In this document: in pieces, positions 2,696 through 57,895 of the stretch
How the letters are laid out: each line of letters opens with the position of its first letter
Numbering within the stretch: position 1 is the first letter of the stretch
Position numbers and translations under genes: made by a program
Assembly: GCF_002113885.1 (NCBI RefSeq)
Contig: NW_018408899.1
Location: 2,118,278 to 2,182,277 of the forward strand
Reading direction: 5' to 3'
Origin: Mizuhopecten yessoensis
Lineage: Eukaryota
Length of the DNA stretch: 64,000 bases
The notes under the pieces: generated by a model
What the model saw: only the letters and a program-made list of their open reading frames with translations
What the model was told of the DNA's origin: nothing
The model's database searches: none

Positions 2696-2738
2696 CACAT
2701 ATCAGATCAAAGTTGACTGTAAAAGAGTTGTCTGCCCT
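2696..2738 (+). repeat. Left terminal inverted repeat (starts CAC)
   Basis: Inverted match to 8911-8955; 26 of 27 nt identical over ACATATCAGATCAAARTTGACTGTAA plus the adjoining base block. Confidence 0.85.
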
Positions 2739-3759
2739 TTGGTCAACTTCGTCACGTTTCGCCTATGCATTACCGGCTCTTAAAGTCAGATTGTTAAGCA
2801 GTCCTTGATATATTGACTTGGTATCGTTTATTACTCCCGATTGCAGTTAACTGTGTTTATTTCGAATTGAACGAATGTGTTTGCATTTACATCAGGATCA
2901 GCTACACGTCGTAAAATTGTAAGTAAAGCCATCCGATCGAGTGGTTTTGCCAAAGAAAAGGCGGCGTTTGGTGAGAGGGTAGCCCAACAATTTATTATAT
3001 TTAGAAACTGTGAACAAGCCAATCACTTAATACCTTTGGAATGACATCATTGGAAATCACAACTATTCAGCCAATCAGGTTGGAGATAGATATATCTAAA
3101 AATAAATCCGTAATTTCCTCGTTTTCTTTAGTTGAACGGCAACTGGTGCTGGGTGAAAATCATAGCCAAGAAAAAATTCCAGTCTAACAATTTTATTGGC
3201 ACTTGACATATCACATTTTAAATCACAGTTTACATATTACAACCGTTCCTTTCCGGCGAAATAAAAAAAATACACACTTAGCAATTAACAATTAATGTAT
3301 AACACTATTTGTAGATAAAAATTAAAAATAATAATAAAAAAACAAATGAACACATCACATCAGAGATCTCTTTTAGGTTTTGACACAAGAGGACAGATTG
3401 TTAAGAAATAAAAAGCACAATTTGTAGATAAATCAATGTATTAGAAAAAAATACTTGCAACATTTAACAAAAACAAATAATACAGTGTAAAATCTCTTAC
3501 AATTTACAATGTGCTTTCAACAACTTGATTTATACATATATGTATTGCCATGGAATGTTACTTCATATATGCAGGTCAGGTATTACTTCATAAAAAAATA
3601 AATAGCATTATATTTCATAAAGAAATAACATGTGCTATAAACAAAGCAAACACATACCCTCACACATATGTAACTAGTAAGTTTTCTTAACTTTCTGTCA
3701 CGTTAAATACAGGATTACCAACAACAAATCTTTTTCAGCTTTTCTGTTCCGTGTATATG

Positions 3760-5874
3760 TTATGACTTACCACAACTAATTTTATTATGATCTGCACCAC
3801 CACAACATGAACATTTCAGTGTCTTTGATTTTTGCCTTTGTGAATTTTCCAAGATTGAGATTCTATTTTGTTTTTCCATGATCTGGCGCAATGCTAGTTG
3901 AGGTTTATGACAGCTGCCTCGAAAGTATTGTTTTGTGATGGTGTCATTTAATTTTTCCAGTCCTTGTTGGGTAAACGAAGAAATATCTCCATGACGCCTG
4001 ATTAATTCATGTGCATGACATCGAAGAATGTGAATGTAAGGTGTGATGTCCCGGGACTGAAAGGCTTCAACATACAGCAAACACCACTCTTTTGTCCGTT
4101 CTTCTAATTCATCAGCATCAGGAGTTTCAGATTTCATAATTTTCTCAATTTGAGAAAAACCATCCCATACTTTCTGCAAAATTTCTGCTCGTCCATCATC
4201 TGAAATGAGATCATTTGCACAGAATGATTTCATCAGTTTCAGTTTTTCTGGGCCAATAAGATCTCTGTACTCAAGGCGCTTTGTATCCCGGTTTACAGAG
4301 AGCGAGAAATGTATTCCCAATTGTTCCAAAACAGTTTCTAATTTTGCGACATGTTGAACTTTACTTCTGTCAATCACTCCTGTGTTGAAGGTAGTGTTTC
4401 CATTTATGTTATCAAGTGTTCTGAGCTCTGCTATAAGCAGATTGAAAAGTTTGTCTGTAATTCTTAGAAACATGTGCAAAGGGTCCACCACAACCCTCAG
4501 TGGACCAATATGTGGGAACAGTGGGGGATTAACTACAGAAAATGCTTTTTTACTAATTTTTTTGCGAGCTTTCAGACAACCGTCAGGGCATTCATACAGA
4601 GACCTAGCACCCTTGGTTACATCCTCCATTGACCATTCTAAATCTAATTTACATTTTTCAGACTTACTGCACTTGCAATACACACAGAAATATTCTGAAG
4701 CTATACAAGGTATTCCCACTGCAACCAAGAGAAACTTATAATCTCCACCAAGGAGTATTTCAATAGTAAAATCCCTTCCATCAACAGTGATAGATGAATC
4801 CTGTAATTCCCCAACTTCCTGTCGTAAATCTCTAAGTCCATCAGCAAGCTCACTGTAAGCTTCCTTCGAATTCATCACACAAAGAGGGTAGTTTCCACTG
4901 GCAGCTCTGCATCTCTTCTCATTGATCACTGTGAATGACACATTTACAACGTGCAGACGTTTACCAACATTTGTACCATCTCCTGATAACTTGATTTTGA
5001 TTTTTCCATCAGGTGCAAATTTATTATCTTCTGCAGTTAATGAATTCAAAACTTGCAAAAGTTTAGTTTTCAAGGACTGTTGGACTCCGAGGCCATTGGG
5101 AGTATCCACAATCTTAAATCCAGTATTTAGCTTATTCACATATTCCTGTAACACATGACGCCTTGGTAATTCTTTACAATACATACTAAGTTCGGCATAT
5201 GCCTCTCTGCTGATATTGAAAGTGTCTAAAATATAAAGCAATGCACTCAACTCATCAGAGTTTTCCTCCATGTCTTGCTTCTCTTTACTTTCTCTGAGCA
5301 CCAACACTTCTTTCTTGCCATTTTCCCTCTCAACCGATACAGACAAAGGTTTTATATTTTCTTTATCCAAGAATTTCAATGACTTTTTCACTGTTTCTCT
5401 CTCCACCTTCCTTCTTTTGGACTGACCAGACTTTGTAAGCTCAGAAAATTTCCGACCAAGTGGCTTTGAACATTCTGGTATGTTATTGTTTTTTACATTA
5501 AGTAAGATAGTTTCTGTTAATTTTTTATTTTCTTCTTGACATTTTAGCAACATTTCTTTATGTTCTTTAAGCACATTTTCACATTCATGTCTATCTACCG
5601 GAGCTTGCCATTCAAATGCAGACGAGGAAAGTTCAGAAAGAAATTTCCTGAATTGGAATCCACCTAGTTTACGTTGTTTTTTTGCTTTGTCTTTCAGCTT
5701 AAAAATTAAAGACTTCAAATTTTTCAAATCACTTTCAGATGGATTCACTTTTACAAAAATTTTGTCTTCAATTTTTCTAATGACCTGGCGAACAAAGTAA
5801 TCATTCATAGGTTTGTCTCGAAACTGATCATTATCAATTATTTCAAACAGAATCTTTTTTGAAAACAAAACCAT
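3760..5874 (-). CDS. RAG1/Transib-like DDE transposase, 704 aa, uninterrupted
   Basis: Motifs: NBD-like GRKFSELTKSGQSKRRK, SGD299G, GGD378YKFL, C397xxC400, DPLH467, ITPYIH615ILRCH620, QQGLE640KLN, and C-terminal CSCCGGADHNKISC (Cx2Cx4Hx4C). Order and spacing parallel mouse RAG1 D600/D708/C727/C730/H795/H937/H942/E962. Confidence 0.9.
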   Translation of the reverse strand: MVLFSKKILFEIIDNDQFRDKPMNDYFVRQVIRKIEDKIFVKVNPSESDLKNLKSLIFKLKDKAKKQRKLGGFQFRKFLSELSSSAFEWQAPVDRHECENVLKEHKEMLLKCQEENKKLTETILLNVKNNNIPECSKPLGRKFSELTKSGQSKRRKVERETVKKSLKFLDKENIKPLSVSVERENGKKEVLVLRESKEKQDMEENSDELSALLYILDTFNISREAYAELSMYCKELPRRHVLQEYVNKLNTGFKIVDTPNGLGVQQSLKTKLLQVLNSLTAEDNKFAPDGKIKIKLSGDGTNVGKRLHVVNVSFTVINEKRCRAASGNYPLCVMNSKEAYSELADGLRDLRQEVGELQDSSITVDGRDFTIEILLGGDYKFLLVAVGIPCIASEYFCVYCKCSKSEKCKLDLEWSMEDVTKGARSLYECPDGCLKARKKISKKAFSVVNPPLFPHIGPLRVVVDPLHMFLRITDKLFNLLIAELRTLDNINGNTTFNTGVIDRSKVQHVAKLETVLEQLGIHFSLSVNRDTKRLEYRDLIGPEKLKLMKSFCANDLISDDGRAEILQKVWDGFSQIEKIMKSETPDADELEERTKEWCLLYVEAFQSRDITPYIHILRCHAHELIRRHGDISSFTQQGLEKLNDTITKQYFRGSCHKPQLALRQIMEKQNRISILENSQRQKSKTLKCSCCGGADHNKISCGKS

Positions 5875-6021
5875 TTCAAATACAGTTTGTAATCCTACAT
5901 GTACCTAGGATAAAAGGAAGTTGTAAATGAACATCATAACTGAATACCACTGACTGAAGTGTTCAATGTCCAAAAAACACACAATAGGTTACCTAGAAGT
6001 GTTGTTGAATCAATTGAATTT

Positions 6022-8892
6022 TCAAATTGAATCATTGTTTAACAGATTCTGAAACATATTTTTGTTGCCTGGTTTCTTCACAAATGAAAAAGTTAGTTGG
6101 CTACCACGGTTCATATAATCTTCTTCCACATGGTCCGGGAACAATAAAAAATCTTTCAATGCTTTCCTTTGCCCTAACCAGTACCTGATGGTGGATGTAT
6201 CGATGAAAAACGAGTCACCTTGCTCATTTAAAATCCTATAGTCAAAACCGACTCCCAGTAGCCGTTCGAGGTCTTGTCTTTTTGCTATCCGATACACCTT
6301 ACGTGTTCTCGTCGCTTTGTGGAGTGTTCCACAACATTCCAATGGTATGAATTCCTCTGAAGTCATATACTGGTGCAAAATAATCTTGCTGTCACTTCGT
6401 CCTGGTGAAAGGGATTCTTTTATATTGATTTTTAAGCTTTGGATCTGTGTAGAATGATGTAGAGGTGTTGATTTTACTGCACTTTTTTTTATGTATTCAT
6501 CGTATCGATGATGCCATCCTGGAAAAAAAAAGAGCAAGCAAATAGTTAAGACCAACAAATAGGGTATTTAGGGTCTGCTATAGATAATGTAGATCTACAT
6601 TATACACAAAGTGTTTAAAAACTTCAAATTATAAAATAACACAAATTGACCTACCAACCATACATTTATTGTATTTGTAAACATATATTTTTGGCTTAAT
6701 AGTAATAAAACTAGTACATAGAACTTATCACACACATGGGGTGGGGTGGGGTGTGGTGGGCGAGGCGGGTCGGCTGTACTGTGTGCTTCAGTAGTCAGTA
6801 TGCTATATGGATATATATAGCTATGTATTTGTACATCCTGTACATGTTCTGCTTTTAAAAACAGTGAACTTGAGATTGAATGACAAATTATACAAACTCA
6901 TATTGCATATGAAATTACATGACAAGTCATGTATCTATATATGTGTAACAGTGTATCTATGTGAAAACTCAGCAATTTTATATTTATATAACATCCATAA
7001 AACAAAGGTGTGTCCACTGCCTGTCCAGACTGCAGACAGACAGATGAATGGACACCATGGAATTATTGCTGTTGGTCCCTTCCATTTTCAAGTGGGGCCC
7101 TTATTATTATAGAATATTAAACATTCCTATTGGTTTTTAACTCAAGGATGTTATTTATTAAGTTATTTCTATATAAACCAGGAATTTGAACTTTTTAATT
7201 TAAATTTTAAAGCTGGCTGATCAAAAGCATTTCTGAACAAAATCTGAAATCTACAGAAAACCAATTCTAATATTTATTCAAATACTTTAATATATTAGCA
7301 AAGAAAATCCTGTGAGCAATTGGTCATTTACTGTTTAGAGCATTTTTTTTTCAAAAACAAGAGGACCTTTTCATTTCATGTAAAATTAAAAGAAAATTGA
7401 AATATAGGCACTATATTATATATATACATATTTTTATCATTTGCATCGCTTTATTCTGTGTGGCCTTGAGCTTAAACTTTTCATTTTAAAAAAGACACAT
7501 GTACATATTACACATGCATGGTAATGTATATATACAATTAAGTTTGTCAACATTCTAGTGACTATAATTTACCTATGTAGTGAACCTTTACCATATCCTT
7601 ATACTTGTCATCATCAACAACCTCAATCGGATAAAACCCTGCTGTCCAGCTACGTCTTCTGTTACTACTTGACGTGATGGACGTGTTCGGTGGATTGGCA
7701 AGGTCACTGCAAAAAAAAGTTTTACATATAAATGTAATTTCTCAGCCTACCAGTAGTTTGGTTTCAACAAATTCTATTTCTAGCCAAGTCTTTTCCAGGT
7801 TGCACAGCATCAGATACATATGTAACCGGTTATATACGTCTCTGACAACATGATGTGCATTTGTACAATATTGATTATTATATTTTAGTAATTAAGCTAA
7901 TTTAATTTTGTTAAATTACTCATGTACATACATCAGTAAGGAGTACATGTACCATGATATTATCATTTTTTATTTGTTTTTAAGATTGTTTTATCTGCAC
8001 AGCATATGAATCTATAATGATGCACATCATCTATTAGCAGAGTTCTCTGGCCCCTACGTATACACCAGACTCAGACAATTTGACAGATACCTGGGGTGGA
8101 CATCTTTTAGCTATCTGTCAAAATGTTTAGGTCTGGTCAGGCTAACTGTGTATGTCATCTATGTTTGTAAAGATAAGATCATGATTATTTATTTTAAAGT
8201 AGGACTTTATTATAGGTCCCCGAGTAGGAAAAAGCTATATCCTGCACTCCTAGTATCTTCCTGCACTCCCGGATCCAGAACTTATACCAGTATTAAATTC
8301 TTAGCTCGAGGCATTAATATATGAACATTGACAACTGAAGAAAAAGATGCCAATGTGAGTTTCTGTCAGTCCATTTCAATTATGGAATTTTAAATATCGT
8401 ACACTGTTAAAGTGTTTAGACGGTCTCATATCAAAATCAAAGTAATGAACCCAGGAATCACAAGAATTCATTTGTTGCCATGTATCATTTTAATTAACTC
8501 AAGAGCATGTATATATATCATTATATGTCATTAGCTTTGTGCCGTTTGTAAAGAAATCATCCAAAAGTATTATTACACAACTGTCACCTCCTAGAACACC
8601 TAATTGTGACAACTGCACTCAAATTGAAAGAAGATGAATTCTGCTCTATCTCTCTTAGTCGTATATTACCGGTAGCAAAATTGCCCGGACACCGGCTTCA
8701 CTTCACTCGATGGAAATGTAATCCATATTAATAGTGATTAACATGAAATATTGCCACTCAGTAACGTATATTTTGTGAACTGATATAATAACTTACTTAC
8801 GCATAGGAAGACATCTGATTTCTGTCCTTTGAAACTATCTTTTTTGGACGAAGTTTAAGCGCAGCCGGTTCCTTCTCAGCATTCGTCGCCAT
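6022..8892 (-). CDS. Transposon accessory protein, ~240 aa, with an N-terminal chromo-barrel/Tudor-knot motif and an uncharacterised C-terminal domain; exons 8892-8801, 7706-7573, 6518-6022
   Basis: AAAATGGCG start. Canonical GT-AG introns with matching phases (2, 1) give an open 723-nt CDS. The motif FYPIEVVDDDKYKDMVKVHYIG|WHHRYDEYI is only assembled across the exon 2/3 junction. Confidence 0.8.
7804..7851. mobile_element. P-element-like excision footprint (17+17-bp TIR remnants, 7-bp near-TSD)
   Basis: ACAGCAT | CAGATACATATGTAACC-GGTTATATACGTCTCTG | ACAACAT; same TIR sequence as 1381-1405. Confidence 0.6.
8064..8144. mobile_element. Degenerate small foldback/MITE remnant in accessory-gene intron 1
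   Basis: ACCAGACTCAGACAATTTGACAGATA ... TATCTGTCAAAATGTTTAGGTCTGGT inverted repeat. Confidence 0.45.
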
Positions 8893-8910
8893 TTTGATGG
8901 AAACTTTTAC

Positions 8911-8955
8911 AGGGGAGATAACTCTATGTTACAGTCAATTTTGATCTGATATGTA
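8911..8955 (-). repeat. Right terminal inverted repeat
   Basis: Reverse complement matches the left TIR; the terminal base reads T instead of C. Confidence 0.85.
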
Positions 8956-12500: not shown

Positions 12501-15332
12501 AATATTTGTTATTATAAGTATTGAGTAAACTTTTAAATAGAATTTCCACAAAATATCAAACCAAACTAAACCATAACTGTGAAAGCATTTAATGATGATA
12601 TCAAAGTTTTACTTTCTACACAAACAATGTACGTATTAAATGTGTCGCAACGTTTCAAGACCGACGGGTCCCTTTGTCAAGCTATGACTGAGTGAGCCAT
12701 TTAATGGTGTTTTGGTTTCTTTACAGCAATTGGTGGCCCCTGTTTGTGCTGTTTTTCTACATCCTGGCCCCTCTGCCGATGACCCTGTCCAAGCGATGTA
12801 TGAACTCATTTGACTCGTCCAGTAGTGCCTGTTTAGAAATGGCTATCTTTGTTACTACAGGGATAGTTGTGTCATCGATGGGGTTACCATTGGTATTGGC
12901 ACATGTCAGTGTGGTAAGTATTAGGTACATTAAAAAAGTTGAAAAATTAAGGCTACAAATATGCTAATTCCATGTTGGTCAAGTAATCGGACTTAGTCCT
13001 AATGATATTTTGTTCGTTTGTTTATGTTTAACGGCCCATCGACGGCTGTGGTCATTTAGGGCCACCTAATGATATCAATGGCCCTAATGATATCATTGGG
13101 CCAATATGGCATTATCTAATTAATGACACTTTAATTAATTGTCTTTCTAAAATAGCAGAAAAAGTTATTAATTTTAGTGTTCAAATGTCAGAGCTGCGTT
13201 CAGTTGGCATTCATTTCAGTATTGGTTCATGATCAGTTTGTTTTGTATTGGCCCAGTTGGTCGATAATGGCCAAGTCCTAGCCATATTGGCCCAGTTGGT
13301 CAATAATGGCCCATTCCTAGCCATACTGGCCCAGTTGGTCGATAATGGCCAAGTCCTAGCCATATGGTCCAGTTGGTCGATAATGGCCCATTCCTAGCCA
13401 TATTGGCCCAGTTGGTCGATAATGGCCAAGTCCTAGCCATACTGGCCCAGTTGGTCGATAATGGCCAAGTCTTAGCATTATTGGCCCAGTTGGTCGATAA
13501 TGGCCAAGTCCTAGCCATATTAGGCCAGTTGGTCGATAATGGCCCATTCCTAGCCATACTGGCCCAGTTGGTCGATAATGGCCCAGTCCTAGCTATATTG
13601 GCCCAAATGGTCGATAATGGCCCATTCCTAGCCATACTGGCCCAGTTGGTCGATAATGGCCCAGTCCTAGCCATATTGACTCAGTTTGGGCACAGTTTTC
13701 CCATATTATTATCAAGGTGTGAATAGTAAATTTATTCAATATTACATAAACACGGGTACTATATACATGTAATAATGTAATACATGTAATAATGTAATAC
13801 TTACACATGTAGTATATGATAGGCTTATTAGCCAAGGGCCAGTATGGCAGACCAAGGCCTAATAACTTGGCCAATATGGAATAAGCTTGTAAATAACACT
13901 ATCATATAGGTGTATATGTGGGGTTATTAGTTGTGGGCTAATATAACGGACCATGGCTAATAACTTGGCCTAATAGGGATTAAACTTATTATCAAACCTT
14001 CCTATAGTACAATTATAAAAACTTGTGGCCATGGGTGAAGACTGAGGCCTACTAACTGGGTCAATATTAAATTAGCTGATAAATAACACTTTTATTGATT
14101 AACTTTCTAAAAAAGAAAATTAACCATAATTCAACATATTCCACATTATTTGTTTAGTTGATTTATCCCTATCATGTATGGATAGACATTTTATTTTTTC
14201 ACGCTCCCCTTTATTGTCATTGATTGCCATGAGATTGTGCAGCTTTTCAAATGAAAGTCAGTTTAAGTCACTTTTGATACATGTTGATGACATTGTGTGG
14301 TAATACTTCCAACCCAACATCACCTCTCCTTGGATTTCTACTCCAAATGTCACGTTCAACGAAGAACTTCGAATGTGAAGGCCATTGTATATGTAGATTC
14401 CAGCACCATACCTATTCATTGATGATAACTCTAGAAATGTTAGAATGACAAGGGATGAGTTGGATGGAGCAAATCTTGATATTGATCAAGTTTGTTCTTT
14501 ATTGGCCCAGTTCATCCAATATTGCCTCAGTTTATTGGTGATATTGAGTGGGTATTTTGCCATATTTGTATCACTCCTGTTGTAAATATAAGTATATAGG
14601 CTTAATCGTACAAAAAGAGGAAAATGAAAGGGACTTTGAATACAAAAAGGAAAATACTTGGAATTAACATTAAAATACATCTATATTTCAGAATAAAGAT
14701 CTAGGGTTATCCATCGAAACTTGGAAAAGAAAATGAAGCATGTGTTATCAAAAGCATCTTATAATTAAAGAGTCGCCAAATTAACAAGATCTAGAGGCTA
14801 AAGGAGATTAAACACTTATTTGAGTAATACGGAAACAAACATTTGTTTTAGATGGCAGCCATGATAGCCACCTTTGATTCAGATTGATGATTGGCCAATA
14901 ATTGGTATTGTGTATTTATAATTCTGACAAATTTTCTGCTAAACTGACAAAATTAAACTAGATAAGTGTATTAATAAATTTTCAAGATGGCAGCTGTGGT
15001 AGCCATTTTGGATTCACAATTGAATTGGAGGGAAAAACCCCAGCTTAGTCAGGATTGTACGATATTCATTCTTACAATGTTAAGAATTGTAGAAAGACTA
15101 ACTAGAACATTTGGGAGGAAGAAAAAAAAGAATATTCAGGTTATGAATGTCTTTCAGAGTTTAGAAGTTTTTCCATACCTGGGCCAGATAAGCTAATACA
15201 ATGTTGGTTTATTTTCAGATCCAGTGGGGAGCATGTGCGTTGGTGCTGTCAGCTAACATTGTAGTGTTTTTGACAATTCTTGGCTACTTCTATGTTTTCG
15301 ACAGTGATGACCTTGACTATTCAATGTGGTAA
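9530..15332 (+). CDS. LEPROT: Leptin receptor gene-related protein / endospanin (Vps55 family), 130 aa; exons 9530-9545, 11736 (1 nt), 12136-12210, 12727-12913, 15219-15332
   Basis: Spliced product [48 protein letters not shown]...ACLEMAIFVTTGIVVSSMGLPLVLAH...IQWGACALVLSANIVVFLTILGYFYVFDSDDLDYSMW closely matches LEPROT/LEPROTL1. Splice sites are canonical. An acceptor at 9494 implies an upstream non-coding exon. Confidence 0.95.
13250..13690. repeat. 39-bp minisatellite (~11 copies) in a LEPROT intron
   Basis: Unit GGCCCAGTTGGTCGATAATGGCCAAGTCCTAGCCATATT; the 3n period produces spurious repetitive ORFs. Confidence 0.95.
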
Positions 15333-16232: not shown

Positions 16233-16514
16233 CATAGAGGTTTTATTTTTGCTATAATTGTGACCTAAACATTTACTCAGTACATAAACCAAACAAATGT
16301 CTTGCCTTCTGATAGATGATTAGTTATGATATATATATTAACCAGCTTAAGTGTTGCATGAAATTTATACCCTGAAAATTTGTTCCAGGAACAAAAATGT
16401 GTATTTTTGACCTCATGAAATTAAAGTGCTATACAGTAATACAAAAATTGTATATTTCCTTATGTGACGCTTTAAATTTATTGTTCGTTTTGTTAAATGG
16501 TCAGCACAAGGCTT

Positions 16515-17785
16515 GTTTAGTTTCAGTACACAGACATGTACTGGTATGATATTGTGCTGTTTCAGTACACCGACATGTACCGGTATGATATTGTGCTGTT
16601 TAGTTTCAGTACACAGACATGTACCGGTATGATATTGTGCTGTTTAGTTTCAGTACACAGACATGTACCGGTATGATATTGTGCTGTTTAGTTTCAGTAC
16701 ACCGACATGTACCGGTATGATATTGTGCTGTTTAGTTTCAGTACACCGACATGTACCGGTATGATATTGTGCTGTTTAGTTTCAGTACACCGACATGTAC
16801 CGGTATGATATTGTGCTGTTTAGTTTCAGTACACCGACATGTACCGGTATGATATTGTGCTGTTTAGTTTCAGTACACCGACATGTACCGGTATGATATT
16901 GTGCTGTTTAGTTTCAGTACACCGACATGTACCGGTATGATATTGTGCTGTTTAGTTTCAGTACACCGACATGTACCGGTATGATATTGTGCTGTTTAGT
17001 TTCAGTACACCGACATGTACCGGTATGATATTGTGCTGTTTAGTTTCAGTACACCGACATGTACCGGTATGATATTGTGCTGTTTAGTTTCAGTACACCG
17101 ACATGTACCGGTATGATATTGTGCTGTTTAGTTTCAGTACACCGACATGTACCGGTATGATATTGTGCTGTTTAGTTTCAGTACACCGACATGTACCGGT
17201 ATGATATTGTGCTGTTTAGTTTCAGTACACCGACATGTACCGGTATGATATTGTGCTGTTTAGTTTCAGTACACCGACATGTACCGGTATGATATTGTGC
17301 TGTTTAGTTTCAGTACACCGACATGTACCGGTATGATATTGTGCTGTTTAGTTTCAGTACACCGACATGTACCGGTATGATATTGTGCTGTTTAGTTTCA
17401 GTACACCGACATGTACCGGTATGATATTGTGCTGTTTAGTTTCAGTACACCGACATGTACCGGTATGATATTGTGCTGTTTAGTTTCAGTACACCGACAT
17501 GTACCGGTATGATATTGTGCTGTTTAGTTTCAGTACACCGACATGTACCGGTATGATATTGTGCTGTTTAGTTTCAGTACACCGACATGTACCGGTATGA
17601 TATTGTGCTGTTTAGTTTCAGTACACCGACATGTACCGGTATGATATTGTGCTGTTTAGTTTCAGTACACCGACATGTACCGGTATGATATTGTGCTGTT
17701 TAGTTTCAGTACACAGACATGTACCGGTATGATATTGTGCTGTTTAGTTTCAGTACACAGACATGTACCGGTATGATATTGTGCT
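16515..17785. repeat. 44-bp near-perfect minisatellite (~29 copies)
   Basis: Unit GTTTAGTTTCAGTACACCGACATGTACCGGTATGATATTGTGCT. Confidence 0.97.
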
Positions 17786-25459: not shown

Positions 25460-28400
25460 TCAGGAAACCTCCAAGTCTGCCATGTTAAGAAGCCTGTAAG
25501 CAATATCACGTTGTAAAGGTCTCTGTAACGGGTGAGCTAACAGCTGTGCCATTTGATCATATAACTTGGTTGGATTTCTGGCTGCTTCAAAGATGTAACT
25601 CTGTCCTTTTTCATCCAAGTCACAAATACAGTCAAATATTTGCTGAAAAGAAATAACCATATTTTAATCAAATTAATAGTTTTATTTCAATCTCATTTTT
25701 TTCAAAAACAGGTACATATTTCGATTTTTTTTTTTAAATTCAAAAGAATTCTGGTGATCTCTTCTTTTGAATTTTGATTACTCTTATGGCCGGACTAGTG
25801 AATTCCATTTAGGAATACATCAACTGGGGTATGGAGAACTAAACATACACTAGCGGATGCTGTGAACACAAACAAAATCGTAAGGTGCAAACTTGTCTGA
25901 GCAATATTTTTATGGAACATTTATATCATTTTCATCAAGTAATGTCTTAATGACCTAGGCAGAAGAATGAGGACAAAAGAAACGGTTGATTGACAAACTG
26001 CAGGGTGTACCATAATACCATCAACACTCTGACTCTACTTTATGTTGTTCTTATACTAATTTTCTCACACATAGATAACAAAATTCCAGTAAAAACTTCA
26101 GCTCAAACTCACATGATACAATACAAGATAGTGGCGAAGATAGGGCCAGACTCAGCAAGGATCATAAAATTGTCTTGGACTTCAAACAGCAGATGTTTGC
26201 AAAAGATCTATTTTAAGCTAACGTACGGGAACATACATTACTTACATTTAGTGTATATGGATGTACAAAAAAACTACATGTAAATGAAGTCAAATTCTTA
26301 TATAAGTATGAAACTGAAAGTTTAGACATCACTCCAATTTGTACTTATATCCACATTGTTTCATGATTGTAGAGCCTGTTTACCGACCACATGATCGTCA
26401 AGCCCTGGTTACCCTGCCTCCGTGATGGAGTTTTTACCTATCAAATGACGGTGGGGCCTGTACTTTCTCCCACAATTGATTGAATTGCCTCTCGTTTAAC
26501 CTGTTCAAGATTTCTCTGCATCCCCCTAGGGTATGATTTCTCTGTTACCCTGTAGGGTATGTCAGATTGCACGCAGAAAGAAACAATATCATGATGTCAC
26601 AGGAACAATCAGACGTGACATTATAATCAGCTCTTGATTGCAGAGCCGGAGGATATGCAAATCAGGAAAAAAACATTACTTTTTACTCGGTATTGGAATG
26701 AAGGGAGAACAATAAGTATCCCCTTCCTTGAGGGTGTAACAGAGACATCTCCAACACTCAGGGATATTATTTGGTTGTCTAACCCTCGACAGAATCACAG
26801 GTCTGGTTAGGCAAACAAACCAATCACCCCTATGGTTGGCGATTTCTCTGTTGAACCCTCAAGGAAGGGGAAGATTCTTTTAGTCTACCCTGTCTCCATG
26901 ATGGATTTTTTACCTACCACATGATGGTGGGGCCTGTACTGTCTAGCCTGTCTCCATGATGGAGTTTTTACTTACCACATGATGGTGGGGCCTGTACTGT
27001 CTAGTGTCTACCCGTCTCCATGATGGTGTTTTTACCTACCACATGATGGTGGGGCCTGTACTGTCTAGTGTCTACCCGTCTCCATGTTGGTGCTTTTACC
27101 TACCACATGATGGTGGGGCCTGGACTGTCTAGCCTGTCTCCATGATGGAGTTTTTACTTACCACATGAAGGTGGGGCCTGTACTGTCTAGTGTCTCCCTG
27201 TCTCCATGATGGTGTTTTTACTTACCACATGATTGTGGGGCCTGTACTGTCTAGTGTCTGCCCGTCTCCATGATGGTGTTTTTACCTACCCCATGATGGT
27301 GGGGCCTGTACTGTCTACCCTGTCTCCATGATGGTGTTTTTACTTACCACATGATGGTGGTGCCTGTACTGTCTAGCCTGTCTCCATGATGGAGTTTTTC
27401 CTTACCACATGATGGTGGGGCCTGTACTGTATAGTGTCTACCCGTCTCCATGATGGAGTTTTTACTTACCACATGATTGTGGGGCTTGTAATGTCTACCC
27501 TGTCTGCAGGATGGAGTTTTTACTTACCTCACACTTGTTGTCTTCAGAGGGAGGCTCATGCACATACAGGGCATCAACAAAAAAGTATGGCGAGGAATCC
27601 AGGAAACGGAACATCTGAAACCAAATGATTCGGGTCAAATGCAATTTAGTCAGGATATCTGTAACAGTTTTGAACCCAACATGTCTTGTAGATAGAGAAT
27701 AATACATGCCTTTTTCCATATCACACCCAGTATCAACCCGAGACTGCAATATCAGCACAAGGGCCGAAGGCCCGAGGGCTGATATTGATCGAGGGTTGAT
27801 ACTGGGTTTGATATGGAAAAAGGCATGTTTTATTCTGTTTATTACATACTTACTAATAAAAGCTACTATCTTAAAATCTATTTTTCTTTTGAAATATTGA
27901 AAAAACGAAAAATTTCCAAAAGGGGTGTGATACGGGTTTTGCGGGCTGATACAGGTTTTGGGGTGTGATACGGCGGGGCTGATACGGCTTTTGGGGTGTG
28001 ATACGGCGAGTGCTGATATGGGTAAGAGCAATTGTATCGTATCGCATATACAAACAAGAGGCCCAGAGGGCCTGTATCGCTCACCTGAATATGTTTAAAA
28101 TAATTGGTATGAAGTAAAGATATAGCACTCCATGGTAGGTGCTGTAAGTACATATGAAATTTCAGAAAAACCCATCCAGTACTTGAGATATAAAAAATTT
28201 CAAACAGAGCCCCACCCCTATGACCCTGGGTCATACCCACCGTTTATACAAATTGAGTCCCCTTGGCCCAAGGATGCTCCAGACTAAATTAGGATAAAAT
28301 CCCTACGGTAGGAGAAGGATTTTGAAGGTTTTACCTATTTTCCCTAATCGTACCCGCCCATCTGTCCCAAGGGGGCCACACCCACCATTTATACAAAATG

Positions 28401-31400
28401 GAGTCCCCTTGGCCTAAGGATGCTTCAGACTAAATTTAGTCAAAATCTACTTGGCCGTTCAGGACTAGTAGCGTTTTAAAGGAAAAGTTGACGGACGAAC
28501 GGACGGACACCGGACGCTGCGGTATGGCATAAGCTCACCATGGTCCTTTGGACCAGGTGAGCTAAAAACCTGTATCTATTATCTATTAGTAAGTATGTAA
28601 TAAAAGATGTTACATGCAAACAGTTTCATTACACTGCAGCAGTCTTTTTCAAAGCATCTATGTAGACAAATATTTGATTAAATTTTACAAATAATTAATG
28701 GAGCTCAGGTTTTCTCTTTTACACAGTACTGAATGTATATCATGTAACCAGCAAGTACCTCTTTGTCAGCCATGTTGATAGTTCCCTGTGATCGCCCCAG
28801 TAACAACAAGGTCCTGACAATATATGGGGGTGGCAGTACCGCAGGGTCACCAGACACTTGTGGCAACTCCACACGGGAATTTCTGGAAACAAACACATTA
28901 GGGTAGAATTATCGCACAAAAATATTACAAAACTTTTGAAATCTGTATGAAGTGAATACTACTGGGTCGGTGAAACGTGAAACTCTCTAAGACTGAGGTC
29001 CAAATATTGAATGTCAAAAAGTACATGCCCATCTTGGAAGGAAATTTCTCAATTTTTTTATTTTGGTGAAACAACAACCATATAAAAACTTATTCTGATA
29101 TGGCATTGACAAGTTAGAGACAACAGGACCTAGATCATTAAATGATTTAATTTAGGCTGTTCTATTAAGCTGCAAACATTTGTCATGTGATGTTTAACAT
29201 TAATATCACAGCGGATGACAAAATCTATGGACCAAAATCTATAATAATCATAATAATAATATACAGCATTTATCTAGCGCCCTATATAATTTGTAAAATT
29301 ACTCTAAGGCGCTTTACAACATATAGATAATAGTAATGGTTATAATTGTGAAAACAAACAACAAAGGCTTGCAATCACTTTCATACATTTAACAAGCAAT
29401 GTGCACATAATTGAACAAATAAAAGGGTGGTATTTACATGACGTCTTTGCAAATATTCTAAAATGCAGACGTGAAGAGGTGAGTCTTTATGTCCCTCTTG
29501 AACTTGGCCAGGGTATTCGACTTCCTAATAGCAGATGGTAAGCTATTCCACAACGTAGCCGAAACCCTCCCAAAGCATCTGTTTCCGTAGGTCACAGTAC
29601 GAGATTTTGGGACACACAACAAAGATTCTGACTCCGACCGCAGTGATCTTGACGGCTGATACAGGGTAACAAGTTCCTGTAGGTACTGAGGAGCTGTTCC
29701 ATTCAGTGCCTTGTATGTGTATACCAGAATTTTGTACTGCGACCTGTATCGTACAGGTAACCAGTGCAACGAATAAAGCGCAGGTGTGATGTGCTCTCTC
29801 TTTCGAGTACGAGTAACTAGCCGTGCTGCAGTGTTCTGAACCCTCTGCAGACGACTAGTTAGTTTNNNNNNNNNNNNNNNNNNNNNNNNNNNNNNNNNNN
29901 NNNNNNNNNNNNNNNNNNNNNNNNNNNNNNNNNNNNNNNNNNNNNNNNNNNNNNNNNNNNNNNNNNNNNNNNNNNNNNNNNNNNNNNNNNNNNNNNNNNN
30001 NNNNNNNNNNNNNNNNNNNNNNNNNNNNNNNNNNNNNNNNNNNNNNNNNNNNNNNNNNNNNNNNNNNNNNNNNNNNNNNNNNNNNNNNNNNNNNNNNNNN
30101 NNNNNNNNNNNNNNNNNNNNNNNNNNNNNNNNNNNNNNNNNNNNNNNNNNNNNNNNNNNNNNNNNNNNNNNNNNNNNNNNNNNNNNNNNNNNNNNNNNNN
30201 NNNNNNNNNNNNNNNNNNNNNNNNNNNNNNNNNNNNNNNNNNNNNNACTGTCGTCGTTCACTCAGGTATGACTGTATCCAGCATAGTGCGGTATCAGTCA
30301 CTCCATAAGAGTGTTCCAGACGTTTATAAAGTATGCCATGGTTGATGACGTCAAATGCAGCTGACAAGTCCAGCATGACAAGCACCGCTCTGCACTTGTT
30401 ATCCAATGCAGAAGCTATATCACTATGTACACGTAGGAGGGCCGTCTCAGTAGAGTGTCCCATGCGGTAGGCCGATTGCATGTTGTCATGGAGACTGTTT
30501 GCATGGAGATGAACCTCTAAATGTCGGGACACAACCTTCTCCAAGATCTTAGACAGAAAAGGCAGATTTGAAACTGGGCGGTAGTTTTTGAACTCCTCCT
30601 TGTCCATTCCAGGCTTTTTTAACAATGGTCTGACATGTGCCTTCTATGGACCTGGCAGTTTAATATGGACGTTATTTGAAAAAGTTTAGATATGTACACG
30701 CACATGTGTACCCTCCCTCAACAAAGAACATTTGTCCAAGACCAGTTACACACAGCTTACATGTTTACACTTGCAATGCAGGGGATGGTTTTTGAAGAGA
30801 GTTACATGTACATGGTCTGCTGGAATATACTTCATTTTATATGCAGGTACATGTATAATTATCAAACAATGCATGATAATCAATGAAAAGGGTTGTAAAC
30901 CCTTTCAACACTGTAGATTATAATGGACTCATCCAGATAAATGTATGGTAGAGTCTACTAAGCTACCTAGGGGTGAAAGGGTTGATCACAGATGTGATAT
31001 TTCTGTTGAGCTTTAACATGATTACAATGATTTTGCTTACACATGTTACAGTTAAAAGATTTTTTTTTTTATCTGAAAATGTACCTTTTTTCTCAGCACT
31101 ATTCTTTAAATGCAAGGTTTCAAATTCTGCCATGTGCTACAGTCAAGTCTTATGATTTACACAAAGCAGAATTTTAGCCCTGATGTTTCATTTTTATCTG
31201 GGACTGCATAATAATGATTCCTTTGTGGAACTGAAGGAAATATCTAAACTCTTCGTGGGTACGCTTCAAACAAAAATATTTTATAAAATTTCTATGTTAA
31301 GTTACATATAAGGACCAAAATATGTGGGACTGAAGGTTATATCCAAACTTATTGGTGGGTACTGTCAAAAAAAATTATAAATATATTTGATAAAAGTTCT

Positions 31401-37582: not shown

Positions 37583-38810
37583 GGTGTCAGGTCGTATCGG
37601 TAGCAAGACGAAAGTCGTTTTGGGACTTTTTTCGGGTCGTTTCGGGACANATGCCGTTTAAACAATAATATACACATCAATTTCAAAATTATCAAGAGAT
37701 TTAAAGTTTTCATCCAAAGTGTCACATTCAGAAAACGATTGTTTGGTTTGATTAAACTTTAAACCAATGAAAATAAAGGTAGAGAAATTACAATATCTCA
37801 GTATTTCTTTGGTACGGTGTTTTAGCCCGGGTCCGGGAACGGCGTACAAGATTTACCTACCACCGGTGTAGCTGCCTTCGATTCAAACGTCAATTTGATC
37901 AAGACTGATTGCGATGGCTGACCAAGAAAGACAAGGCGGTGATTACATACAATCTATGACATTTTCGTAAATGGATTACTGTAGATATGCTTAGAAGCAA
38001 CTGTAGTTGTCCATTTGATTATGATCGATTTATAGGCGACTACACTTTTGTAAAGCAGCTGACGTTCAGCTGTAATATATTCAGCAGTAGATGACCGGTG
38101 TCAGGTCGTTTCGGGACTTTTTCCGGGTTGTTTAATTTCGGGACATGTCAAAAGTCGTTTCGGGATTTTTCATTTATTTAAACAATCGATTGGATAAAAG
38201 TTATTACAACTTGTCATAGCCTTCTACTGTCATACATTTATTCATGATTTTAATAAAACATGAATAAATATAGATATAATATTCTCACTGACATAAATAC
38301 ACAACATAAAAACATATCGTTCAAAATATATAACTGGATTTGATAAATTGATTCACATGTCTAAAATAAAATAAAGTCTACGTGTTTCACGTTTTTACTT
38401 TCGTGAAATTTAATTTCTATATATATATAACAAAAAATAAAATGCTTAAAACATTGTTAGAGTCAATTAGATGTCAATAATGGAGAATATAGTGAATCGA
38501 AAACATATTACATGTATTACAATATCAAACAAGAAACCAACCTATCATGAACGAAAGAAATTGAATGTTGAATTTCATAAGTTCCTCTAGATCTGTATTT
38601 AGTAATGAGATTAGTTTCACCAGGTTTACAACACACTGTCAATCGGGTAAATGTTGGCAGGTATCCCCTCAAGCATTAGCAATCTGGTAACACTAATGAT
38701 CGCAAGTACCGGTAAGTCATGACACAGGTCATAGACTAAAACCATACTTGTTTATTAACAGGACTTTATATGAAATGAGAGCGAAATGTTACCGAAACGA
38801 CCTGTTACGA
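37583..38810. mobile_element. Unclassified TIR-element remnants with GTCGTTTCGG subterminal repeats
   Basis: GGTGTCAGGTCGTATCGGTA (37583), GGTGTCAGGTCGTTTCGG (~38097) and the inverted TACCGAAACGACCTGTTAC (~38790). Confidence 0.4.
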
Positions 38811-40168: not shown

Positions 40169-49721
<9,553 letters not shown>

Positions 49722-50406
49722 GGATATTTCTTGTGTGTGATGTTGATGCTTCATTCAAGAAACTTCTAATCATGCTTTTTAGATAAATATTCATCCAAGA
49801 TGCCTGTTTCTATGAAATAATGTTTTGGAAGAACAGTCTTTCCATTGTTACTATGACAGCAGGGCTGTTGTATTATGTAAGATTTTTTTTTAATTTTTTT
49901 TTTTATGTGAAAAGTACATTTATCTGACAAATATTCCACATGCATGATTGGTTTGTAAGTGAGTGATTCAGGGTTATACAATGGTAATGTTGTTGTGCAA
50001 TTAACTTGCAAAAGAGTTTAATACAACAGTGTTTTAGTAAAGAAAAATAAATGAAATACGATAGAATGTATATATTTTAGTGGGTTCATTAGATTTTCAT
50101 AAAGACTAAGTATCAGATGAATTCAGATTTTAGTAATCTGTACACTGCTAAATACAACTAATTTTGGTATTAAAGAACTTATGTAATTTCAGGTTAAAAT
50201 TAAAAACATACAAGCTGGAAAAGTGTATTCAGCTATTGTTGGTTTCAGTCATCTGAAACTTTCTCATTCAATTAAATTTGAGATTTTGAGTCCACTGTTT
50301 CAAGATTTACAAATTTGAAGACATTTCATTAAGTCCTATCTTAAAATTGGACCTTTTAGAGTGTCTCTGAAAAAAAGGAATATTTATGTAAGTGTAAGGT
50401 AGCTTA

Positions 50407-51580
50407 CACCCTTGACTTCTGATAAACACTGGGTGGATACTAAAGTTTGTCATAGTAACATAGCATACACCCTTAACTTCTGATAAACACGGGGTGGATA
50501 CTAAAGTTTGTCACAGTAACATAGCATACACCCTTAACTTCCGATAAACACTGGGTAGATACTGAAGTTTGGCACAGTAACATAGCATACAACCTTAACT
50601 TCTGATAAACACTGGGTGGATTCTAAAGTTTGTCACAGTAACATAGCATACACCCTTAACTTCTGATAAACACGGGGTGGATACTAAAGTTTGTCACAGT
50701 AACATAGCATACACCCTTAACTTCCGATAAACACTGGGTAGATACTGAAGTTTGTGATAGTAACATAGCATACACCCTTAACTTCTGATAAACACGGGGT
50801 GGATACTAAAGTTTGTCACAGTAACATAGCATACACCCTTAACTTCCGATAAACACTGGGTAGATACTGAAGTTTGTCATAGGAACATAGCATACACCCT
50901 TAACTTCTGATAAGCACTGGGTGGATTCTAAAGTTTGTCACAGTAACATAGCATACACCCTTAACTTCCGATAAACACTGGGTAGATACTGAAGTTTGGC
51001 ACAGTAACATAGCATACAACCTTAACTTCTGATAAACACTGGGGGGATACTAAAGTTTGTCATAGTAACATAGCATACGCCCTTAACTTCTGATAAACAC
51101 TGGGTGGATTCTAAAGTTTGTCACAGTAACATAGCATACACCCTTAACTTCTGATAAGCACTGGGTGGATTCTAAAGTTTGTCACAGTAACATAGCATAC
51201 ACCCTTAACTTCTGATAAACACTGGGTGTATACTAAAGTTTGTCACAGTAACATAGCATACACCCTTAACTTCTGATAAGCACTGGGTGGATTCTAAAGT
51301 TTGTCACAGTAACATAGCATACACCCTTAACTTCTGATAAGCACTGGGTGGATTCTAAAGTTTGTCACAGTAACATAGCATACACCCTTAACTTCCGATA
51401 AACACTGGGTAGATACTGAAGTTTGTGATAGTAACATAGCATACACCCTTAACTTCTGATAAACACGGGGTGGATACTAAAGTTTGTCACAGTAACATAG
51501 CATACACCCTTAACTTCTGATAAACACTGGGTGGATACTGAAGTTTGTCACAGTAACATAGCATTCACCCTTAACTTCTG
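50407..51580. repeat. 61-bp minisatellite (~19 copies) downstream of the TMEM259 stop
   Basis: Unit CACCCTTAACTTCTGATAAACACTGGGTGGATACTAAAGTTTGTCACAGTAACATAGCATA. Confidence 0.95.
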
Positions 51581-52880: not shown

Positions 52881-54973
52881 TTTATTAGCTCACCTGGCCT
52901 GAAGGGCCAAGTGAGCTTATGTCGTGGTGCATCATCTGGCGTCATTATTTTACTTTAAACAACTTCTTCTTAATAACCAAAAGGCATAGGGTGATGATAT
53001 TTGGCCAGAAGCAAACTGGGATGAAGGGCTACCAAGTTTGTTCATACAAATGACCTTCACCGATATTCAAGGTCACAGGGGTCAAATATGTTAAAACCTT
53101 TAAACAACTTCTGATGAATAACCAAAAGACACAGGATGTTTATTTTTGGCCAGTAGCATGCTAGGATGAAGGGCTACCAAGTTTGTTCAAATGAATGATC
53201 AAATATGTTCAAAATCTTTAAACAACTTCTTCAAATATGTTCAAAATCTTTAAACCAAAATAAGCAGGATGCTGATATTTGGCTGGTAACATGATGGGAT
53301 GAAGGGTAACCAAGTTTGTTCAAATGAATGACCTTGATACTTATTCAAGGTCACAGGGATCAAATATGTTCAAAATCTTTAAACAACTTCTACTTAATAA
53401 CCAAAAGACCAAGGACGTTGCCAGTAGCACGCTAGGATAAAAGGCTACCAAGTTTGTTCAAATGAATGACCTTGAATTATATGCAAGGTCACAGGGGTCA
53501 AATATGTTAAAATCTTTAAAAGTCTTCTGAATAAACATAAGGCCTAGAATGTTGATATTTAACCAGTAGCATGCTGGGTACCAAGTTTGTTAAAGTAATT
53601 GACCTTGATCCATGTTCAAGGTCATATTTGGTCAAATATGTATAAACATTGAAATGACCTAATTTCAATAAACAAAAGGATAGGGTGGTGATATTTTGCA
53701 AGTTGCATCCTGAGATGAAGGGCTTTAAAAATTGTTCAACATAAAGACCTTGTTTGACTTTCAAGGTCACAGGGGTGAAATGTTTTTAAATCTTTTAACA
53801 GGTTCTTTTGAATGAATTTTTAGGTCACCTGAGCTTTAGCTCGAGTGACCTATTGCTATCCGTCTTCGTCCGTCGTCCTCCGTCGTCTGTTAACATTTTA
53901 CATTTCAAACTTAAAGTCAAGTTCTGCTGGGCCGATTGAACTGAAAGTTGGTAGGAATGATCGACTCATGGTCCTGATAAAGTGTTGTTATTTTTCGGGT
54001 CGATCAGAAATCCAATATGGCCGCCACGGCCGCCATTTTGAAAAACTATTTCAAACTTAAAGTAAAGTTCTACTTGGCCGATTGAACTGAAACTTTGTAG
54101 GAATGATCGACTCATGGTCCTGACAAAGTGTTGTTATTTTTTCTGGTCGATCAGAAACACAATATGGCCACCACGGCCGCCATTTTGAAAATACCTATTT
54201 CAAACTTAAAGTCAAGTTCTGCTAGGTTGATTGAACTGAAAGTTGGTAGGAATGATCAGCTTATGATCCTGACAAAGTGTTGTTATTTTTTCTGGTCGAT
54301 CAGAAATACAATATGGCCACCACGGCCGCCATTTTGAAAATACCTATTTCAAACTTAAAGTCAAGTTCTGCTGGGGCGATTGAACTGAAACTTTGTAGGA
54401 ATGATCGACTCATGGTCCTGACAAAGTGTTGTTATTTTTCAGGTCAATCAGAAATCCAATATGGCCGCCGTGGTCGCCATTTTGAAAAACTATTTCAAAC
54501 TTAAAGTCAAGTTTGACTGGGCCGATTGAACTGAAACTTTGTAGGAATGATCGACACATGGTCCTGACAAAGTGTTGCTATTTTTCGGGTCGATCAGAAA
54601 TCCAATATGGCCGCCACGGCCGCCATTTTGAAAAACTATTTCAAACTTAAAGTAAAGTTCTACTTGGCCGATTGAACTGAAACTTTGTAGGAATGATCGA
54701 ATCATTGGTCCTGACAAAGTGTTGTTATTTTTCGGGTCAATCAAAAATACAATTTGGCTGCCATTATACTTAACTATTTTTTACTCAAATTGGTACATAT
54801 TTCAACAACAAAAATAAATACTGTAGGACTCAGGTGACCGTTAAGGCCCATGGGCCTCTTGTTTAATAACAAATACTGATATTTTTGCCTGTAACTTTAT
54901 TTTAGATCACTTTTAAGGTTACAAGTGTGAGATTTACACCAGGTGAGCGATGCAGGCCCATTTGGCCTCTTGT
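52881..54973 (+). mobile_element. Helentron-like (HINE) element interrupted by a second nested HINE (53817-54862)
   Basis: Outer element: 5' TTATTAGCTCACCTGG, 3' CAGGTGAGCGATGCAGGCCCATTTGGCCTCTTGT. Inner element: TTTTTAGGTCACCTGAG...CTCAGGTGACCGTTAAGGCCCATGGGCCTCTTGT with ~6 repeats of ~146-149 bp. Confidence 0.8.
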
Positions 54974-56352: not shown

Positions 56353-57895
56353 TGGTACTTCCTTTGGTACAGGACAGCAGAGAGCATACCCAGTACTTCC
56401 CTTGGTAAAAGACAGCAGAGAGTATACATGGTACTTCCCTTTGTGCAGGACAGCTGAGAGAACAGCAGAGAGCATGCCCAGTGCTTCCCTTGGTAAAAGA
56501 CAGCAGAGAGCATACATGGTACTTCCCTTGGTGCAGGACAGCAGAGAGAACAGCAGAGAGCATGCCCAGTACTTCCCTAGGTACAGGACAGCAGAGGGCA
56601 TACATGGTACTTCCCTTGGTACAAGACAGCAGAGAGCATACATGGTACTTCCCTTGGTACAGGACAGCAGAGAGTATACATGGTACTTCCCTTGGTACAG
56701 GACAGCAGAGAGTATACATGGTACTTCCCTTGGTACAGGACAGCAGAGAACATGCCCAGTACTTCCCTTGGTAAAAGACAGTAGAGAGTATACATGGTAC
56801 TTCCCTTGGTACAGGACAGCAGAGAACATACATAGTACTTCCCTTGGTACAAGACAGTAGAGAGTATACATAGTACTTCCCTTGGTACAGAACAGCAGAG
56901 AACATGCCCAGTACTTCCCTTGGTAAAAGACAGTAGAGAGTATACATGGTACTTCTCTTGGTACAAGACAGCAGAGAACATACATTGTACTTCCCTTGTT
57001 ACAAGACAGCAGAGAACATACATAGTACTTCCCTTGGTACAGGACAGCAGAGAACATACATAGTACTTCGCTTGGTACAGGACAGCAGAGAACATGCCCA
57101 GTACTTCCCTTGGTAAAAGACAGTAGAGAGTACACATGGTACTTCTCTTGGTACAAGACAGTAGAGAGCATACATAGTACTTCCCTTGGTACAAGACAGT
57201 AGAGAGTATACATAGTACTTCCCTTGGTACAGGACAGTAGAGAACATACATAGTACTTCTCTTGGTACAAGACAGTAGAGAGTATACATAGTAGTTCCCT
57301 TGGTACAGGACAGCAGAGAGCATGCCCAGTACTTCCCTTGGTACAAGACAGCAGAGAACATGCCCAGTACCTCCCTTGGTACAGGACAGCAGAGAGCATG
57401 CTCAGTACTTCCCTTGGTACAAGACAGCAGAGAGCATACATGGTACTTCCCTTGGTACAAGACAGCAGAGAACATGCCCAGTACTTCCCTTGGTACAGAA
57501 CAGCAGAGAGCATACATGGTACTATCCTTGGTACAAGACAGCAGAGAACATGCCCAGTACCTCCCTTGGTAAAGGACAGCAGAGAGCATGCTCAGTACTT
57601 CCCTTGGTACAAGACAGCAGAGAGCATACATGGTACTTCCCTTGGTACAAGACAGCAGAGAACATACATGGTACTTTTCTTGGTACAGGACAGCAGAGAG
57701 CATACATGGTACTTCCCTTGGTACAAGACAGTAGAGAGTATACATAGTACTTCCCTTGGTACAGGACAGCAGAGAGCATGCCCAGTACTTCCCTTGGTAC
57801 AAGACAGCAGAGAGAACAGCAGAGAGCATGCCCAGTATTTCCCTTGGTACAAGACAGCAGACATGGTACTTCCTTCGGCACAGTACAGCAGAGAG
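56353..57895. repeat. 38-bp minisatellite (~40 copies)
   Basis: Unit GTACTTCCCTTGGTACAGGACAGCAGAGAGCATACATG; source of many spurious ORFs. Confidence 0.95.

Follow-up and report, generated by a model that had tools for sequence, protein, structure and literature searches.

Within a 64,000-nucleotide stretch of the scallop Mizuhopecten yessoensis genome (contig NW_018408899.1, hereafter the window), a gene for a RAG1-like transposase lies directly beside a gene for a putative chromatin reader, and both are enclosed by inverted repeats. This arrangement raises the question of whether the second protein belongs to the transposon and, if so, what it does there. A first-pass annotation had regarded the unit as a RAG1/Transib-like element with CAC-initiated terminal inverted repeats (TIRs) and a chromo-barrel protein in place of RAG2. 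The computational analysis described here shows that the transposon is real and recently mobile in the scallop, that it belongs to a RAG1-related lineage which has been described barely, if at all, and which is of old age and broad distribution among marine animals, and that the partner is a fixed, selected, and co-diverging component of this lineage. The preferred reading, to which a probability of roughly one half is assigned, is that of an autonomous two-protein cut-and-paste transposon. The partner would serve as an accessory subunit, with a C-terminal domain that works with the transposase and a reader that tethers it to methylated nucleosomes.

The Element and Its Ends

Three copies of the element are present in the M. 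yessoensis assembly, one of them being the window copy. Across 6,256 bp, the other two deviate from it by 0 and 7 positions; the flanks are unrelated among the three copies, and the sequence they have in common is exactly 2698-8953 (6,256 bp, ends 5'-CATATC...GATATG-3'). As near-identical copies reside at unrelated sites, the scallop copy must have been active recently. The inverted repeats expected around the region were confirmed, with arms at 2697-2727 and 8924-8954 that are 90% identical and constitute the top pair within the 14 kb examined. The repeat at the partner-gene end precedes the partner ATG by 61 nt. Likewise, the two intact minus-strand genes were found in tandem, 147 nt apart. 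The CAC-initiated TIRs had to be given up: TAC is read at the right end (8955), two bases of the "CAC" at 2696 are flank and only the third belongs to the repeat, as its first base, and the boundary of the three copies starts and ends with CATATC. All 18 distinct ends collected from assemblies of scallops, corals, and other marine animals start with CAT (18/18). The inverted repeats of the lineage are short (8-30 bp), and the elements measure 3.7-8.4 kb with two genes.

The target duplication of the lineage is 1 bp. The same single base is found on both sides at 22/29 insertion sites, compared with a cross-pair rate of 0.34 (p=6e-6), and at 16/21 sites if only boundaries fixed by copy comparison are counted (p=4e-5). 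Duplications of 2-3 bp occur at chance level across the 29 sites, and none of 4-8 bp was found among them; a 5-bp target duplication was rejected, being absent at the window copy and at the insertion sites in general (0/29). A few of the sites are possibly alleles or share a common flank (L046/L059), which leaves the result unchanged. In the two other scallop copies, the flanking bases are C/C. Of the seven sites lacking a 1-bp duplication, five show A/T or T/A flanks (window 2697/8954; L001, L002, L034, L062), and such complementary flanks may stem from blunt insertion at AT/TA steps.

Some observations concern individual relatives. The Argopecten copy (L002) is nested in another element with perfect 22-bp inverted ends (1291-1312/13118-13139); this pair was rejected as the ends of the transposon, since the CATATC ends lie inside it. 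In the same copy, the 3' part of partner exon 3 is repeated three times (L002:6642-7840). A 607-bp element resembling a miniature inverted-repeat transposable element, with 57-nt inverted ends, is located upstream of a related transposon (L004:5839-6445).

A Transposase Related to RAG1

The intronless transposase gene encodes a protein with a complete DDE triad, a zinc site of the RAG1 type (CxxC/HxxxxH, formed by C397/C400 and H615/H620), and a C-terminal zinc knuckle (CxxC-x4-H-x4-C). D299, D378, C397, C400, D464, and H615 are invariant in 79/79 transposases, and H467, H620, and E640 are kept in 78/79. The window transposase alone reached RAG1 at E=0.047 in a single-sequence search. A profile of the 79 relatives matches RAG1 at E=1e-6 and ProtoRAG RAG1L at 0.007, and a further profile search recovered ProtoRAG RAG1L at 8e-5. 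The RAG1 alignment covers the region of the second aspartate, the CxxC motif, and the Y-x-H...H...E stretch. Profile match and complete DDE and zinc motifs thus uphold the annotation as a RAG1-like DDE transposase and point to common ancestry with RAG1. The HzTransib structure was not matched by either family profile in the PDB profile search. No match was obtained for the window transposase and the single partner exons in Pfam, a PHROGs search gave none either, and viral and prokaryotic genome collections yielded no relative.

The Partner Protein

The three partner exons are in phase, show GT/AG junctions, and match the RefSeq 240-amino-acid protein P0122 exactly, in agreement with the three-exon gene of ~240 codons proposed earlier. 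Whole-protein analyses were performed on the RefSeq entries P0001 and P0122, the partner of the window was searched exon by exon, and open reading frames broken in relatives were entered as single pieces. As there is no AATAAA between the genes and RefSeq lists partner and transposase as isoforms of one locus, a shared transcript in the scallop is suggested. The spacer contains a candidate 88-nt intron (5992-5905, minus strand), and a further AG, located ten bases past it, would share the frame of partner exon 2. Partner intron 1 harbors a hairpin-forming inverted repeat (8064-8137, 29-nt arms, 83%) and a palindrome (7810-7845).

A structure model of the partner, calculated from 146 sequences, reached a mean confidence (pLDDT) of 88, with values above 90 across most of residues 60-240, and appears to consist of a small barrel-like and a mixed alpha/beta domain. 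Behind a basic N-terminal tail (isoelectric point 10.6), residues ~55-90 resemble MBT repeats as well as the MRG15, Eaf3, MSL3, ARID4A, and MOF chromo-barrels, with matches to the solved domains of L3MBTL3 (1e-10), MRG15 (2.4e-5), ARID4A (4e-5), and Eaf3 (8e-5). The model contains three confident strands here (58-64, 69-74, 83-86), compared with five in a full barrel. Positions Y56, Y74, W77, and Y81, which we take to correspond to the cage positions of MRG15, are aromatic in 93, 95, 95, and 74% of the family, respectively. These ~40 residues are therefore likely a Royal-family (chromo-barrel/MBT-like) reader. The annotation as a chromo-barrel partner holds for this part, as a Royal-family domain with cage positions; it does not hold for a further ~145 amino acids, which form a separate domain.

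This C-terminal domain (residues ~96-240) is the better conserved part of the partner, with K109, L112, G164, W/F167, R170, N173, and D177 near-invariant. It has no match in Pfam, the PDB, or viral structures, and Foldseek searches of the partner against the PDB and BFVD gave nothing below E=0.01. Neither kelch nor PHD was detected in the partner by Pfam, the structure model, or Foldseek.

Linkage, Co-divergence, and Selection

The linkage of partner and transposase was borne out. At loci chosen by their transposase, a partner homologue is found within 1.2 kb in 61 of 87 cases; the other 26 are mostly contigs ending too soon, four carry a sister-clade partner, and a few loci show no partner (L049/L050, L077). 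In the reverse test, all partner homologues chosen irrespective of a transposase adjoin one (5/5). The other genomic copies of the TIR-bounded unit carry the partner as well, with P0122 being encoded at three places. Pairwise identities of the two proteins correlate (Spearman 0.60, permutation (Mantel) p=0.0005, 31 loci); as these loci are related and non-independent, the correlation reflects shared descent, not co-adaptation. Ratios of nonsynonymous to synonymous substitution rates (dN/dS) of 0.11-0.29 for the partner denote purifying selection, and those of the transposase are 0.05-0.11. The partner family comprises 747 clusters at 50% identity in a profile search (E below 1e-10), and in 8/9 elements the distance between the partner ATG and one end is 61-107 nt.

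The tandem layout, presented earlier as a defining trait, is the exception: 53 of the 61 linked loci are convergent and 8 tandem. In a family tree, a quick search drawn with a midpoint root and containing family members only, the tandem scallop elements form one group (99% support) among convergent relatives; the tandem layout is a rearrangement of the scallop elements. Two CCAAT boxes (3019 and 3071, plus strand) ~320-370 nt inside the left end point inward, against the genes, and could be the relic promoter of a convergent layout.

Sister Clade and Cage-less Partners

A sister clade with longer transposases (profile match E=1e-112) was detected in Stylophora, Pocillopora, Acropora, Nematostella, octocorals, Saccoglossus, and Pinctada. 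Its elements are ~5.2 kb long and have CATAGCC ends (L062:4304-5334, L052, L064, L067, L094-L096), and its transposases of ~850 amino acids often carry a terminal SAP domain in place of the zinc knuckle. The convergent partner gene consists of three exons and encodes a canonical chromodomain, followed by a domain that agrees with that of the scallop partner in length and pattern; Pfam Chromo is above cut-off in four of these proteins. A second group, the recently amplified L027-L034, L043 family, has asymmetric ends (CATGTC/CATATG) and a partner without cage, which still has the C-terminal domain.

Placement Among Known Transposons

Transib elements are characterized by 5-bp duplications, CAC ends resembling recombination signal sequences, and a single gene (PMC1131882). 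The scallop lineage is similar in its DDE transposase of ~700 amino acids with C(2)C and H(3-4)H motifs, but differs in its CAT ends, 1-bp duplication, and partner gene. With RAGL/ProtoRAG elements (PMC7204232, PMC9435367), it shares a RAG1-fold transposase and one partner within TIRs, a mostly convergent and sometimes tandem arrangement, and a partner with a histone-mark reader at one end. In contrast to RAGL, its partner is not a kelch/PHD protein, its ends are CAT instead of CAC, and its duplication is 1 instead of 5 bp; its transposase is only ~20-25% like RAG1, over short stretches. The statement that the element fits neither Transib nor ProtoRAG/RAGL was therefore correct, as it departs from both in their defining features. 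The placement within the Transib/RAG superfamily was not supported (CAT not CAC, 1 bp not 5 bp, HzTransib unmatched).

The CACTA-Mirage-Chapaev-Transib (CMCT) clade is marked by CA..TG ends and by C(2)C and H(3-4)H motifs (Kojima, PMC12730594). The lineage shows the same 5'-CA..TG-3' termini and carries C397, C400, H615, and H620 in the interval from its second D to its E, but makes a 1-bp duplication, whereas the clade is given with 2-5 bp (Kojima 2025, PMC12730594). No report of 1-bp duplications in such elements was found in the literature searched. The 1-bp duplication extends the range of the clade rather than excluding descent, and by termini and motifs the lineage appears to be a separate CMCT branch, neither Transib nor RAGL.

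The lineage was further set beside Lanisha, a name reportedly introduced by Maumus, McDaniel, and Carey in 2020 in Repbase Reports. Moss Lanisha elements are 10-12 kb long, with 5-8 open reading frames, 35-40-bp TIRs, and a transposase that is RAG1-like by HHpred (bioRxiv 10.1101/2020.07.03.163634). In the tree of Kojima, the coral entry Lanisha-2_StPi (Stylophora pistillata) is placed on a branch that does not include Transib, Chapaev, or EnSpm, where it joins the Rhizophagus entry (Lanisha-1_RhIr) at 100% and the fern entry at only 28% (PMC12730594). Compared by description only, both groups are TIR-bounded, have more than one open reading frame, and encode a transposase that is RAG1-like by profile methods only; unlike moss Lanisha, the present elements are 3.7-8.4 kb long, with two genes and 8-30-bp TIRs. 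The cited descriptions of Lanisha report neither a chromo partner nor a 1-bp duplication. The lineage is possibly the animal arm of Lanisha, and since it occurs in Stylophora pistillata, it is somewhat more likely than not that Repbase already holds a relative under this name.

Accessory proteins and chromatin readers are also used by other mobile elements: PIF/Harbinger encodes a Myb/SANT protein beside its transposase, and chromoviruses, which are retroelements, read chromatin by a chromodomain fused to their integrase. The scallop lineage resembles the former in having an accessory protein beside the transposase and the latter in having a chromodomain-type reader, but the Harbinger transposase is unrelated, its partner is of the Myb/SANT type, and the chromoviral domain is fused to an unrelated integrase. 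The literature searched yielded no description of a chromo partner in a RAG1-like transposon, of the partner described here, or of its reader. A tentative and rather doubtful proposal goes further, namely an uncatalogued superfamily-level lineage with a one-base stagger that depends on a new-fold second subunit, tethering the transpososome to methylated histones via an exchangeable reader, and that would constitute an independent origin of the RAG1-RAG2 design.

Proposed Mechanism and Alternative Explanations

In the two-protein reading, the transposase would bind the short CAT-ended repeats and excise the element by means of its DDE site and RAG1-type zinc module. Hairpins would probably be formed on the donor flanks during excision, as in RAG, Transib, and CACTA. 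Insertion with a one-base stagger would then yield the 1-bp duplication. The C-terminal domain of the partner is supposed to be the part that the element needs, most likely by contacting and activating or loading the transposase. The swappable N-terminal Royal-family domain is predicted to bind methylated histone tails, to tether the complex to chromatin, and to bias where it acts. Both the cofactor role and the histone binding are inferred.

Several results weigh against this reading. Pfam matches of the window's own reader stay below cut-off (E=0.008), Foldseek of the whole-protein partner model recovered no chromo-barrel, and 15/78 near-full-length partners have no cage motif. In addition, 7/29 insertion sites, the window copy among them, do not show the 1-bp duplication, and the homology of the C-terminal domains between the two clades is weak (probability 15%, E=0.0017). 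The cage-less L027-L043 family consists of six copies, 99.2-100% identical and with intact transposases; since this active family has no aromatic cage, the reader is not essential. The C-terminal domain is the constant part of the partner, while the reader is common, exchangeable, and can be lost.

The partner might instead act at the chromatin level, as an anti-silencing or self-regulating factor and not as a transpososome subunit, comparable to VANC of VANDAL elements and TnpA of En/Spm. Its C-terminal domain would recognize the element's own DNA, and the reader would engage or displace host silencing marks and thereby keep the element expressed. The HP1-type chromodomain of the sister clade, a reader class that binds repressive marks, agrees with such a role, as does the partner ATG near one end, a position suited for first expression; linkage, co-divergence, and selection fit it equally well. 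However, no DNA-binding fold was recognized in the C-terminal domain (Foldseek against the PDB and BFVD), the dN/dS is low, and retention with strict 1:1 pairing from sponge-grade animals to molluscs resembles an obligate subunit rather than an arms-race suppressor. This explanation is considered rather unlikely.

Alternatively, the short inverted repeats (8-24 nt) may call for extra specificity, and the basic tail, the cage dispensable in an active family, and the RNA or DNA binding of some chromo-barrels (Esa1 and MSL3, among the reader matches) would suit an end-binding or nuclear-import helper like the Harbinger Myb/SANT protein, whose Royal-family domain would either bind nucleic acid or be dispensable. 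Against such a helper, regarded as unlikely, most members retain the cage aromatics, and the sister clade has another type of methyl-lysine reader in the corresponding slot. A passenger origin as a captured host gene, which the introns in scallops and the host-type domain could suggest, is very improbable. It is already contradicted by the reverse linkage (5/5), co-divergence, purifying selection, and the 747 clusters, and searches of Pfam and Foldseek revealed no host protein known to contain this C-terminal domain.

Implications

The lineage provides the wider RAG1 family with a second, unrelated partner protein, and the question of why RAG1-type enzymes take chromatin-reading partners becomes accessible to comparison. 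Partners with a chromo-barrel, with a canonical chromodomain, and without a cage occur on related transposases and serve as natural controls. The C-terminal domain constitutes a well-modelled family of hundreds of clusters without Pfam or PDB match. The 1-bp duplication lies outside the 2-5 bp of the clade and implies a target-DNA geometry unlike that of the 5-bp RAG/Transib complex; because of it, repeat finders requiring 3-8-bp duplications would miss these elements. The scallop copy, intact and recently active, can be used as a reagent as it stands, and an integrase that is near-scarless and has a reader slot open to programming might find use as a tool.

Coordinates and Surroundings of the Element

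Table 1. Features of the scallop element (window positions).
Feature	Position	Strand	Remarks
Complete transposon copy	2698..8953	-	Boundary of the sequence common to three copies
TIR, transposase-downstream end, starts CATATCAGATCAAA	2698..2727	+	
TIR, partner-gene end, starts CATATCAGATCAAA	8924..8953	-	23/24 core, 27/30 extended
Flanking bases (target-site position)	2697 and 8954	.	A/T mismatch in window copy
Non-coding 3' region	2728..3759	-	Four AATAAA signals on gene strand
DDE transposase, intronless, 704 amino acids	3760..5874	-	Intact open reading frame
Catalytic DDE	D299 4978-4980; D378 4741-4743; E640 3955-3957	-	
Spacer between partner stop and transposase ATG, 147 nt	5875..6021	-	No AATAAA
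Partner exon 3, residues 76-240	6022..6518	-	Cage candidates W77, Y81, Y84, then C-terminal domain
Partner exon 2, residues 31-75	7573..7706	-	First part of the likely Royal-family domain; cage candidates Y56, Y74
Partner exon 1, residues 1-30	8801..8892	-	Basic N-terminal tail; RefSeq isoform X2

Beyond the element, a host gene of the Vps55/LEPROT family starts at ~10617 (plus strand), ~1.7 kb past its end. Exons of a membralin gene are found at 41084-41650 and probably at 48957-49721 (plus strand; Pfam E=3.5e-17). A reverse-transcriptase fragment of a long interspersed nuclear element (29458-30625, minus strand; RVT_1 E=1.8e-13) is broken by a stretch of N at 29866-30246, and a further N occurs at window position 37650. 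Minisatellite arrays are located at 13246-13686, 16514-17785, 26883-27528, 44326-46364, 46962-47721, 50400-51580, 53902-54763, and 56355-57814, with periods of 39, 44, 64, 34, 43, 61, 146, and 38, respectively; these arrays account for the spurious long open reading frames at 13.3 kb and 56-58 kb.

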